From Orbicella franksi (Eukaryota): 64,000 nt of DNA. Where the stretch lies: positions 34,410,001 to 34,474,000 of the forward strand of contig OZ116700.1 in NCBI GenBank assembly GCA_964199315.1, read 5' to 3'. Position 1 is the first letter of the stretch. Every line of letters begins with the position of its first letter. The notes beneath the pieces are model-generated. The model was not told the DNA's origin. It was given only the letters and a program-made list of their open reading frames with translations, and searched no databases. Shown piece after piece: positions 1 to 3,903 of the stretch. A program made the translations under genes and the position numbers.

Positions 1-222
1 AGTTTTGTCATGTGACCCCATCTGCAAAGGGCCTATTGACTAGTTATCAGTTACACATGACAATCAATTGATACGTTGTAACCAAGCAACAGCTAGACAG
101 ATCTAGATACTGCATAGATCTCTGTAGAGCCACATCATCAGTACCAATATATTTGGAATTCTTCAGAAAATCATACTAATTGTATTTTATTCAGCTGTCT
201 AATATGCTTCATAATATTGTAG

Positions 223-3200
223 ATGCTTCTGAAACATATGACAATGCAAAGCAGCTACAGGTACAAAGAATATTTTTCACGGAAATCAAACAAAATGAGA
301 GCCTTACTGAGGTGGAATCTAAACAAAATGACAACTGCCCTGCGACGGAAGGCAAAGAAAATGATAAAGTTTCACTGGTGCAAACCCAAGAAGATGATGA
401 CTATATTACGACAGAAACCAAACTAAATGAGGATTGTCCTACACTCAAAACCAAACTGGATGACAGCTTTTCTAGGATCAAACAAAATGAGAACTCTCCT
501 AAAGACCAGGCAAATAAAAGGAATACAAAGAAATTATGTAAAGCCAAGAAAACTACTAAGAAAAGGAGAAACTTAGTGAAAAAATCTCCAGGAATGACTG
601 GTATATTTTCAAGACTTGTTGGGATGCATGGATGTAAGAAACACCAAGGTAATAAGCACGGTATATATGTAGCCATTGTGGTTAACAAAAGAAGATATTA
701 AATAGAGTAGAGAGGCATTGCAAAATGGAACAATTTTTTTGAATGTTACATAACAGTTTAATCCTCTTTGTTACCTCAAGATAAAATAAAGAAAATAAAT
801 ATCTTAACAGACCAGTTTCAAGTTAACTGAGACCAATAGTGACCTGTAAAATTATTTTACTGTTTTCCTGTTTTTGTGACTGTATATGTAATGTCTAATA
901 CTTTCTCTTATCAAATATATAAAATAGTGCTAAATGTTACTTTACAGCAAAAGTACTAAAAGTACTCATGGTCAAATTCTTTTTTACTTCTAGGTCAGCT
1001 ACCAAATTCAAAACAGGCCAAGCCTAAGACCAGTTCACAACAGTCAAAAGACAATTCAAGCAAGTACCTCAGCATACAGAAACTATGTGCAACTTATGCT
1101 CCAAAGAAAACTGACAACAAGAGTAATGCAGCTATTCTTTTACCTCGGGTGTCTAACACCAGTTTAACAACAGACAATAACTCTAGTCGTGTACATAGTA
1201 CACCTTCTTCTCCAAGAAAACATCAGCAAGAACTGGAGTTAAATGTTTCTGTAATTTCTCCACGGTCATCACTGTCACAGAAATTATTGAACTCTGATGA
1301 TGAAAAAGTGAAGAAAGTTTATCTCTCTGATGCACATTCTGGAATGATGACAGGAGTACCATGTGCTCCTCCATGCACACCTACAGTTGGTATGTAGTCA
1401 ATGAACTTTTGGTTCCCTTATCAAGTGTGATAACTGGAGCTGCAGTCTCATTTTCTTGGGGTGGCAAATATATACATCTACAAAGGTCAAGTTGATAAAA
1501 TCTCAAGATTACACACCAGTGGAAAAAACTGTTCAAAAAGTTAAAAACACTAACTGAATCTAAAAACATTATTTTAAAAAAACATTGACAGATTAGAATT
1601 TAAATGATAATCTAAAGAATTAGACTAAGAGGTTGAAACGTTCTCCATGGGGTTGCAGTTCCAGCCGGTGATGGTTCTTGGAAAATATGAATACTTAAAA
1701 ATGTTGTTCTTAGCATATGGTATTTGACATTCTTAGCAGATGGTGCTTAGAAGATCGTTGGTCTAATGATGACAATATTTTCTGTTTTTTGTAATATATG
1801 AATTTGTATTATGCCTTGGAAGTCTGTCCTTAATAAATATCAATTGACTAGTTCTTTCCTGGTGTTTGTTGTTATTTTCTTGACTCTAGATGAACTGAAG
1901 AAAGTTGAATACATCCCTTCATTAACAGATGTCAAGGTACACATGCAAAAAATTTTCCACTGCCTTTTACATAAAAAAATGTCATATTCTTATTTTTAGC
2001 TTTAAAATCGAAGGTTCATTTTCTACCATTCAGTAAGATCTTACTTGATTATATTAATTGTGTTATGTTTCATTACAGAGCCAAAGAGCTGTTAAAGCAA
2101 GGCTTGTTACATTGGGTAAACTGGCACTTTCTAGGAAGCACAATAGGGATCTGGTCTCAGCTACAAAAATTGTAGAAAAAATTGGATCACAACTAAGAAG
2201 TTTCTTTCCCTGAAACGTTACTTGTACTTCATAATTGATAATGAGAAACATTTATGCATTGCCACTGATCAGAGAAACATTTTAGCCAAAAGAAATTTCA
2301 GCTTGTTGCTTAGATGTAAGGTAACTAGCAGCACTAAATTGTCTATGGTTCAATGAAATACATGCATGTTTGTAATATTACAAAATAATGAGGTATGCCT
2401 TTGTGTACATGATTTTTTAGTTTGGTATCAACGTAGTATTAACTTAATCATCACTTTTTACTGGTCTAGGAAATAAAATTAGAGCTGACGAACAGAAAAA
2501 GAAGGAAAAAGCTGCAAAAGAGGAACAGAAAAGAGCTTATGGTGCTATTTTACAGCTTAAACAAAGACAGCGAGCTGAGGTACCATCATGTTATAATAAA
2601 CTTTACTCCAAAGTGGATTAAATAGTTTGAAATTATTGATCTTATGGGTTCTGAATAATTCTTTTGAATAAAGCCATTGGATGTACAGCAGCAATTTGTC
2701 AAACTGCTGATGGCACTGCAATATTTCTTTTTGGTTTGATGTTGACTTTAATCATGTGACCCAATTTTCCAAAAGATGAGTCCGTTGGTGATGAATTTGG
2801 AAAATCTATCCAAAGCAAGCTCAAAAGCGCCAGGAATTTGGCAAAATTAGGATTTTAGGTTTTTTTGTTAAACCATTGACTCCTGTGCTGGCCTTAACCG
2901 GCCGTGACGAGCCTTGGCCTTTCTTCCACTTCTGTCGTCATCACCTTTGACCAAAATTGGCATAATCCATGCTCACTTCTGCAGGAGGAAAAGATCTTTC
3001 CAATGATACCCAGATCAGAGTGTTCAGCCCAATGGAGCCTGAGATATGCACAAAAATGTTCAAAAAGTTGAGTGAAAAGCTCAGAGCAAAATTCCCTGCA
3101 ACTACACGTGGCTACTCCATGGCCAAAACAGAGATTTAAACCCCTTTTGAAGGAAAATAGGGAGACTCTTTTAGTGCCAAAGGCGGCAGCCTCTAGGGGG

Positions 3201-3903
3201 GTCCGGGGCCATGCTCACCAGGAAATTTTGCAAATTTAGATTTTCTTAAATGCCTTTTCCTGCATTTTGGAGCTGCTAAATAGAGTAAGACTGCTGGCCT
3301 GATGAGTCTGCACAACACATGGCGAGAGACTGGGTGAGATGATATGAGAAGAAAGTGTAATACATTGCAAAAAAATACTTAAGATTAGCATTTTTCCCCT
3401 TGTTTTCACAATTTTATTATAAATCAGGAGAATTTGATAAGAATCGGGAGACACATCAGATCGGGAGTCTCCCAATCAAATTGGGAGGGTTGGAATCTCT
3501 GCCAAAATTGCCCATCTCAATGATGCTTTCTCAGAATGTTTTAAACTGGAAGCAAGCCCAGTTGAGGGTCAATCACTGCAGCAAAAATTTTGATTTCTGC
3601 GCATACCCAAGCAAAAATGTCGTAATAAGCGATGCTAGTGGAAAGAAAGGCATGCTGTCATGTTGCAAATGCCTTTTTGAGTAGATTGGAGCTAATTTGG
3701 CCCATATCCAGCCTGAAAATCTCCAAAATGTCCAAAAGATGTGTTTTTGGCAAAAAGCTCCAGGAGTCAATGGGTTGATGTTGACTAATTCTGGTCATCT
3801 GCTTCCACAGATTTATGCTCTGAACAAGGTGATGACAGATCTGGAGAATGAGAACTTTAGAAAATTCATGGAAGAACATTCAGCTGAAACACTTCCTGTG
3901 TAG
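223..3903 (+). CDS. 5'-partial uncharacterised low-complexity protein (>=368 aa) ending in a small vasohibin-binding protein (SVBP/CCDC23)-like motif
   Basis: Frame-consistent GT-AG exons 223-648, 994-1389, 1890-1936, 2079-2115, 2470-2579, 3811-3903 (phases 1,1,0,1,0). Spliced C-terminus ...[42 protein letters not shown] matches remembered human SVBP [20 protein letters not shown] at 18/20. Start codon not found in the window. Confidence 0.8.
2872..3774. mobile_element. piggyBac-like non-autonomous element with nested repeat fragments, in the last intron of the SVBP-motif gene
   Basis: Left TTAA|ACCATTGACTCCTG (2868-2885) and right CAGGAGTCAATGGG|TTGA (3761-3778) form a terminal inverted repeat with TTAA-like flanks; no transposase ORF. 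Confidence 0.6.

Follow-up and report, generated by a model that had tools for sequence, protein, structure and literature searches.

Near the start of the DNA analysed here, a window of 64,000 nucleotides from the coral Orbicella franksi (GenBank assembly GCA_964199315.1, contig OZ116700.1, positions 34,410,001 to 34,474,000), lies a gene for SVBP, the helical cofactor that binds, stabilises and activates vasohibin, the tubulin-detyrosinating carboxypeptidase. Our analysis supports the view that this locus is a genuine long-form SVBP gene, transcribed and spliced as one chain, whose complete open reading frame (ORF) of 520 amino acids (aa) extends over seven coding exons, and it is the single SVBP orthologue in the coral genome. 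The coral gene is not special, because its length is ordinary for a non-vertebrate animal; it is an ordinary orthologue. To judge from phyletic distribution, ancestral animals would have had the long form, from which the 66-aa SVBP of vertebrates would derive by truncation. We think it quite probable that this account is correct as a whole, including the binding and tethering roles proposed below.

Gene structure, transcription and identity of the coral SVBP

The sequence-only reading of this DNA had proposed six frame-consistent exons encoding a charged protein of at least 368 residues that ends in an SVBP motif. Both claims were borne out, and the second was exceeded: joined together, the six exons inside the window form a single uninterrupted frame of 368 codons that ends in a stop, with AG/GT at all borders, and a further coding exon lies upstream (Table 1). 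Frame analysis indicated that exon 223-648 begins at an acceptor site in phase 1, and the DNA upstream of the window was therefore examined as part of locus L014 (window position equals L014 position minus 1800). There, the first exon of the 382-aa gene model at the Pocillopora meandrina locus matches an open frame at window -1255 to about -815 with 66% identity, and the product of exon 223-648 is itself 31% identical to its Pocillopora homologue. The ATG of this first exon (L014:545) has an in-frame TAA 24 nt upstream (L014:521), and the exon is closed by a GT donor that follows L014:998, where its phase fits the start of exon 223-648. Because of this upstream stop, and because a NIP7 homologue is arranged head-to-head with SVBP on the opposite strand with the two start codons only ~250 bp apart, there is no room for additional upstream coding exons.

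Stops make up 5.6% of the codons in the window, which puts the chance of an open run of 142 codons at ~3e-4 and of one of 132 codons at ~5e-4. Of the 6967 stop-to-stop frames in the window, just 17 are 131 codons or longer, so the two long upstream exons within it (223-648 and 994-1389) are not chance frames. Pfam at E<=10 detected no known domain in the first three coding exons apart from a sub-threshold match to DUF6363. The order of acidic, then basic, then Ser/Pro-rich sequence that had been read from the letters also stood, with an acidic start to the second coding exon, the polybasic patch KKLCKAKKTTKKRRNLVKK further along it, and a Ser/Thr/Pro-rich third exon.

RNA data from two raw poly(A) runs (X23 and X24) and two contig sets (X5 and, from a sister species, X4) were mapped to L014. 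In the X5 poly(A) RNA contigs, each of the six introns, that upstream of the window included, is found spliced as a GT..AG joint at the predicted borders. Coding exons 1 to 4 are linked in a single X5 contig of 1262 nt (word depth 123), which contains both the L014 998->2023 and 2448->2794 joints, and other X5 contigs carry the remaining three at depths of 125, 111 and 194. The deepest of these is the last joint, 2579->3811, which is also present in two X23 raw reads and in X4.

Assignment to the SVBP family comes from the C-terminal end of the protein. The PF15674 (CCDC23/SVBP) profile, which has a curated cut-off of 27 bits, matches residues 305-364 of the 368-codon chain over profile positions 2-61 of 63 (E 4.9e-22, 78.1 bits), and a six-frame scan of the whole 497-Mb genome at E<=10 returned only two matches, both of them exons of the present gene and both above the cut-off. 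The vasohibin profile PF14822 gave four exon matches, all above cut-off, at one locus on contig C4. With one SVBP locus and one vasohibin gene, the present gene is an orthologue and not a competitor, and the earlier suggestion of a second SVBP-motif protein competing for vasohibin can be set aside. The columns of the core, QRxEIYALNxxMTxLE, and of the F..F downstream of it do not vary between coral-type and fish SVBPs or among 37 long forms. This is the part of the helix that occupies the vasohibin groove in solved complexes.

Only the C-terminal ~56 residues of the coral-type protein align to residues 6-60 of human SVBP/CCDC23 (66 aa; PDB 6J4O, 6JZC, 6OCG and others, with VASH1/2), with an E of 1e-9 for the Porites orthologue, which is identical to the Orbicella franksi protein over most of the core stretch; the core ...(K/R)VMT(D/E)LE is nearly identical to that of vertebrates. 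The locus thus combines a profile score above cut-off, the conserved core, a single long helix (as modelled for the Porites orthologue) and a vasohibin gene in the same genome. What sets it apart from the ~66-aa vertebrate protein is size, the coral protein being eight times longer. By homology with the human complexes, the C-terminal helix would bind coral vasohibin and support tubulin detyrosination. The vasohibin gene itself (L019/L020, G000:C4:21384001-21403900) covers more than 15 kb with many small exons and one repeat-filled intron of more than 10 kb, in which long repeat-like open frames abound; the product of the gene's first exon begins MADEARF, and a short acidic N-terminus (MADEARFCEDGENKDVPSEDES...) precedes the conserved core.

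The closest homologues of the protein are scleractinian, and related corals have intact long ORFs in their transcripts. A Porites RNA assembly contains a 462-aa ORF on a 1730-nt contig, and pocilloporid RNA assemblies contain a 508-aa ORF on three contigs from three samples, in each case with in-frame stops upstream; both products align end to end with the Orbicella protein at 53-56% identity. In the Pocillopora meandrina genome (GCA_942486045.1, L012:9640-10060), the orthologue is annotated as two genes of 382 and 110 aa that lie 47 bp apart. The cause of this split is a one-base shift of frame next to an A8 run, which is probably an assembly error because the pocilloporid transcripts carry the ORF intact. 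For corals, the practical gain is a corrected gene model and a warning about annotations that split or fuse the SVBP gene.

Table 1. Coding exons and motifs of the Orbicella franksi SVBP gene, in window positions (negative values lie upstream of the window)
Feature	Position	Strand	Remarks
Coding exon 1/7	-1255 to -802 (L014:545-998)	+	Outside window; residues 1-151, open frame
Coding exon 2/7	223-648	+	Residues 152-293; first part acidic; AG/GT borders, open frame, RNA joints on both sides
Polybasic patch KKLCKAKKTTKKRRNLVKK	528-584	+	Residues 254-272; net charge +11 in best 20-aa window
Coding exon 3/7	994-1389	+	Residues 294-425; Ser/Thr/Pro-rich; joints 648->994 and 1389->1890 in X5
Motif KVYLSDAHSG	1314-1343	+	End part of coding exon 3
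Motif VPCAPPCTPTV	1356-1388	+	End of coding exon 3
Coding exon 4/7	1890-1936	+	Encodes DELKKVEYIPSLTDVK with EY(I/V)PSxxD(V/I)(K/R) motif; joints 1389->1890 and 1936->2079
EYIPSxxDVKSQR-type motif	1901-1936, then 2079 onward	+	Split over coding exons 4/5
Coding exon 5/7	2079-2115	+	Encodes SQRAVKARLVTL(G); start of predicted 80-residue helix; joints 1936->2079 and 2115->2470
Coding exon 6/7	2470-2579	+	First half of canonical SVBP domain; PF15674 33.6 bits; joint 2579->3811
Coding exon 7/7 and stop	3811-3903	+	Second half of SVBP domain; PF15674 37.5 bits

Long-form SVBPs across animals

The premise that a long SVBP is unusual does not hold, as the sequence databases show long forms to be the rule in animals other than vertebrates. 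A profile derived from an alignment of coral, mussel-type and fish SVBPs was run against 1.84 billion protein cluster representatives and gave 276 matches; among the best 150, about 45 measure 240-606 aa and have their SVBP domain at the extreme C-terminus. Lengths in aa are 266 in the sponge Oscarella lobularis (P0111), which has all of the extension motifs described below; 448 in Nematostella, 211 in Actinia, 310-329 in Paramuricea, 339 in Hydractinia, 462 in Porites, 497 in Oculina and 459 in Acropora among cnidarians; 466-467 in Mytilus, 551 in Dreissena, 563 in Mizuhopecten, 528 in Sinanodonta, 280/425 in Haliotis and 268 in Littorina among molluscs; 452 and 153 in the annelids Capitella and Ridgeia; 606 in the brachiopod Lingula; 571 and 440 in the nemerteans Lineus and Tubulanus; 513, 524, 502 and 441 in the echinoderms Lytechinus, Patiria, Amphiura and Antedon; 488 in the hemichordate Ptychodera; and 458 in the cephalochordate Branchiostoma. 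The unicellular holozoan Syssomonas multiformis (P0139) has a 245-aa relative with an SVBP-like C-terminus. Given this relative and a sponge protein with every extension motif, SVBP seems to be older than animals and to have been long at that stage.

The short type is found in lampreys (102-104 aa) and jawed vertebrates (~66 aa), and it starts at position 22 of the profile. Within the sampled sequences, short size therefore proves to be a vertebrate trait and not a trait of the SVBP family. It is because the long form spans sponge to amphioxus and is absent from lamprey onward that we regard it as the likely ancestral state and the vertebrate form as truncated; the pattern suggests that the 66-aa protein is a stump. 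A search with the long-form alignment found no vertebrate protein that has the extension and lacks the SVBP helix, a weak result in which 8000 word-sharing candidates were scored.

The sequence-only reading would have been refuted, by its own terms, if long SVBPs were already the documented norm in invertebrates. They are the norm in the databases, but full-text literature searches found no paper that describes them, and in a 2016 analysis of the vasohibin family SVBP appears in the reference list alone. In RefSeq the long proteins are listed as uncharacterised, and in UniRef many of them bear the name SVBP through automatic naming. The family-wide long-form pattern thus seems to be undescribed. 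To our knowledge, everything known about SVBP stems from the 66-aa vertebrate protein, every characterised member is small, and the long forms are unstudied.

Residues 1-~395 of the coral protein are fast-evolving, basic (isoelectric point, pI, 9.7), rich in Ser, Thr and Pro and predicted to be disordered, and they include the polybasic patch. They are followed at ~400-455 by an extension that is conserved from sponges to amphioxus (KVYLSxxxSG, PCAPPxTPT, EYIPSxxDVKSQR) and predicted to fold into a small two-stranded sheet that runs on into a long helix, and at ~455-515 by the canonical SVBP helix, the one part still present in vertebrates. Similarity to other phyla begins at about residue 390-400, and a further ~70 conserved residues ahead of the human-type helix are common to all long forms. 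In the alignment of 37 long forms, the motifs that precede the core read K(V/I)(Y/F)LSEKQSG, PCAPPxTPTP and EY(V/I)PSxxD(I/V)(R/K)(S/A)QR. Vertebrates, lamprey included, have no counterpart of these ~70 conserved residues or of the ~395 disordered coral residues before the helix. The full architecture, a basic disordered arm with its patch, KVYLSEKQSG, PCAPPxTPTP, EYVPSxxDIRSQR and the SVBP helix at the extreme C-terminus, is the same in the coral, Nematostella (XP_001629534/A7SFJ0), Porites, Mytilus (LOC143057717 X1), Lytechinus (LOC129276671) and Branchiostoma, and in Mytilus the exon boundaries around the EYIPS exon are also those of the coral. The long forms differ in their middle region, where identity is just 31-56% even between corals.

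AlphaFold2, run on the Porites orthologue with 30 homologues and not on the Orbicella franksi protein, predicts that residues 1-340 are disordered (predicted local distance difference test, pLDDT, <50), that KVYL pairs with VEYI in a small two-stranded sheet (pLDDT 75-84), and that residues 379-458 form one 80-residue helix (pLDDT 90-98). Across the long forms, the N-terminal arm has a pI of 9.2-10.8 and 21-32% Ser/Thr/Pro, and in 20 of the 21 long SVBPs compared, which represent 8 phyla, it bears a patch whose net charge is +10 to +13 per 20 aa, a value that no more than 2% of composition-preserving shuffles reach. The arm evolves fast: among the differences listed relative to the sister species (X4), 17 of the 20 in the first three coding exons change the amino acid, and none of those listed falls in the last four exons. 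Anthozoans have the first ~90 residues in common, and the N-terminal ~150 residues have no detectable bilaterian counterpart. A cross-phylum N-terminal motif that had been suspected by eye (FPLTIIKPP in corals, xxICRPPV in deuterostomes) was rejected when a profile of the cnidarian N-terminus scored bilaterians no better than shuffled decoys.

Possible roles of the extension and alternative readings

The conserved hairpin, together with the extra half of the helix, probably supplies a further contact, be it to vasohibin, to tubulin or to some other partner, and the basic disordered arm would most likely tether the enzyme complex to the acidic surface of the microtubule, so that tethering would set where and for how long the complex acts. 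A microtubule tether is our best guess for the arm, on the analogy of VASH1 and VASH2, whose charged disordered flanks set residence time and diffusion on microtubules electrostatically (PMC9750192). The likeness, charged disordered segments on a detyrosinase complex, is one of function only: the flanks are on the enzyme and not on the cofactor, they have no sequence similarity to the coral arm, and the first exon of coral vasohibin encodes a short acidic N-terminus.

The polybasic patch itself appears compatible with targeting to microtubules, cilia or the nucleus. It may equally simply be a nuclear localisation signal, in which case the arm would hold vasohibin-SVBP in the nucleus or free it at mitosis, without any binding to microtubules; this would change the function of the extension and nothing else in our account. 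K/R clusters such as KKAKKTTKKRR resemble classical signals, the patch is kept in nearly all of the long forms (20/21), and the flanking Ser/Thr-Pro sites could be sites of cell-cycle phosphorylation, yet basic disordered regions are the usual binders of the microtubule lattice and are known to tune the residence time of VASH-SVBP (PMC9750192). A nuclear role is conceivable on these grounds, but we are doubtful of it.

A bolder scheme would cast the ancestral animal SVBP as a 300-600-aa scaffold and not a small chaperone. Its hairpin-plus-helix extension (KVYLSEKQSG / PCAPPxTPTP / EYVPSxxDIRSQR) would provide a second contact with vasohibin or tubulin, its polybasic arm would decide the microtubule site or the compartment of detyrosination, and vertebrates would have cut the gene down to the last helix as tethering moved onto the VASH1/2 flanks. 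We offer these parts jointly as a tentative scheme, which may well not survive in full. The truncation could have taken the route of an internal promoter such as mussels still use. If the extension does contact vasohibin, tubulin or a targeting partner, then the tubulin tyrosination cycle of most animals would be subject to a further kind of control, so far unstudied, and such contacts would explain why vertebrate vasohibins bear charged flanks of their own.

The mussels raise the question of a short product from the same gene. One locus of Mytilus galloprovincialis yields proteins of 467 aa (X1) and 122 aa (X2), and the first exon of the short isoform lies within the 5-kb intron that precedes the KVEYIPS exon, the exon whose boundary is the same in the coral. 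Another mytilid-like transcript has an ORF of 114 aa preceded by an in-frame stop, and Dreissena has products of 551 aa (X1) and 336 aa (X2). If the coral did likewise, a short protein made from an internal promoter may be the routine vasohibin cofactor and the long one may have a specialised or separate role. This is compatible with the account favoured here, and the last joint in X5 is indeed deeper than the 5' exons (194 vs 123), although contig word depths say little about abundance. The coral RNA data, in which coverage is thin, show no joint from an alternative first exon, and the homologous coral intron is just 500 bp. Retention of intron 4 was considered as another source of a short SVBP and rejected, since this intron offers no in-frame ATG and a frame read onward from exon 4 meets a stop after 31 codons, so that such RNA cannot encode the SVBP core. 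We therefore consider two coexisting isoforms in the coral unlikely.

Far less probable still is that the coral makes only a short SVBP of ~110 aa, starting at Met411/412 (MMTGVPC...), with the upstream exons forming a separate gene or an untranslated leader. The paired gene models of P. meandrina and the bias of raw reads toward the 3' end, described next, would both fit such a gene. The former is ruled out as evidence by the frame change at the A8 run and the unbroken ORF in the pocilloporid RNA contigs; moreover, the coral frame is open throughout, one RNA contig links the first four coding exons, the cross-phylum motif KVYLSDAHSG sits upstream of Met411, and a leader in a region of 34% GC would not be expected to hold frames open for 151, 142 and 132 codons. 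We give this reading very little credence.

Several points nevertheless weigh against the long-form account that we prefer. The first 20 codons are not covered by any of the listed RNA contigs of Orbicella franksi, and the 520-aa product is known here from DNA and RNA alone. The raw poly(A) runs gave just 12 reads each, too few for a ratio of long to short transcripts, and their sense-oriented reads are almost confined to the last two exons, with one slight overlap of exon 2. Contigs with introns 3 and 4 unspliced reach depths similar to those of the spliced forms; these could be pre-mRNA, DNA carry-over or intron retention. Since mussels make an isoform of 114-122 aa from an internal first exon, the coral may have a short isoform as well. 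Finally, the proposed tether role of the basic arm comes from analogy, and the patch could just as well act as a signal for nuclear localisation.

Neighbouring genes, antisense signals and repeats

On the NIP7 side of the gene, the joint L014 606->89 has CT..AC ends, which correspond to a GT..AG intron on the minus strand (region L014:1-606, window -1799 to -1194), and hence marks an alternative 5' exon of NIP7 that lies antisense within the first SVBP coding exon. At window 201-600 (L014:2001-2400), a few X23/X24 read pairs over exon 223-648 are oriented opposite to the reads of the last two exons. They look antisense, with too few reads to decide, and no joint to the NIP7 antisense exon was seen among the few raw reads. 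In the pocilloporid RNA contigs L016-L018, NIP7 and SVBP are found together on one unstranded contig.

On the other side, an Acropora cervicornis gene model (P0199, 622 aa) has SVBP fused to a neighbouring Cdc42-like GTPase, and in Pocillopora a Ras/Rho-type gene follows SVBP (L012:17334-19864). The SVBP-Cdc42 neighbourhood, which is also present in our window, appears to be conserved among corals.

The last SVBP intron contains nested interspersed repeats at window 2760-3780. One element is made up of ~2760-3128 and 3501-3780, with a second of ~375 bp inserted at 3129-3502; a genome scan for the repeat gave 742 first-look candidates at 84-96% identity, and RNA word depth in this stretch reaches 2000-3700.

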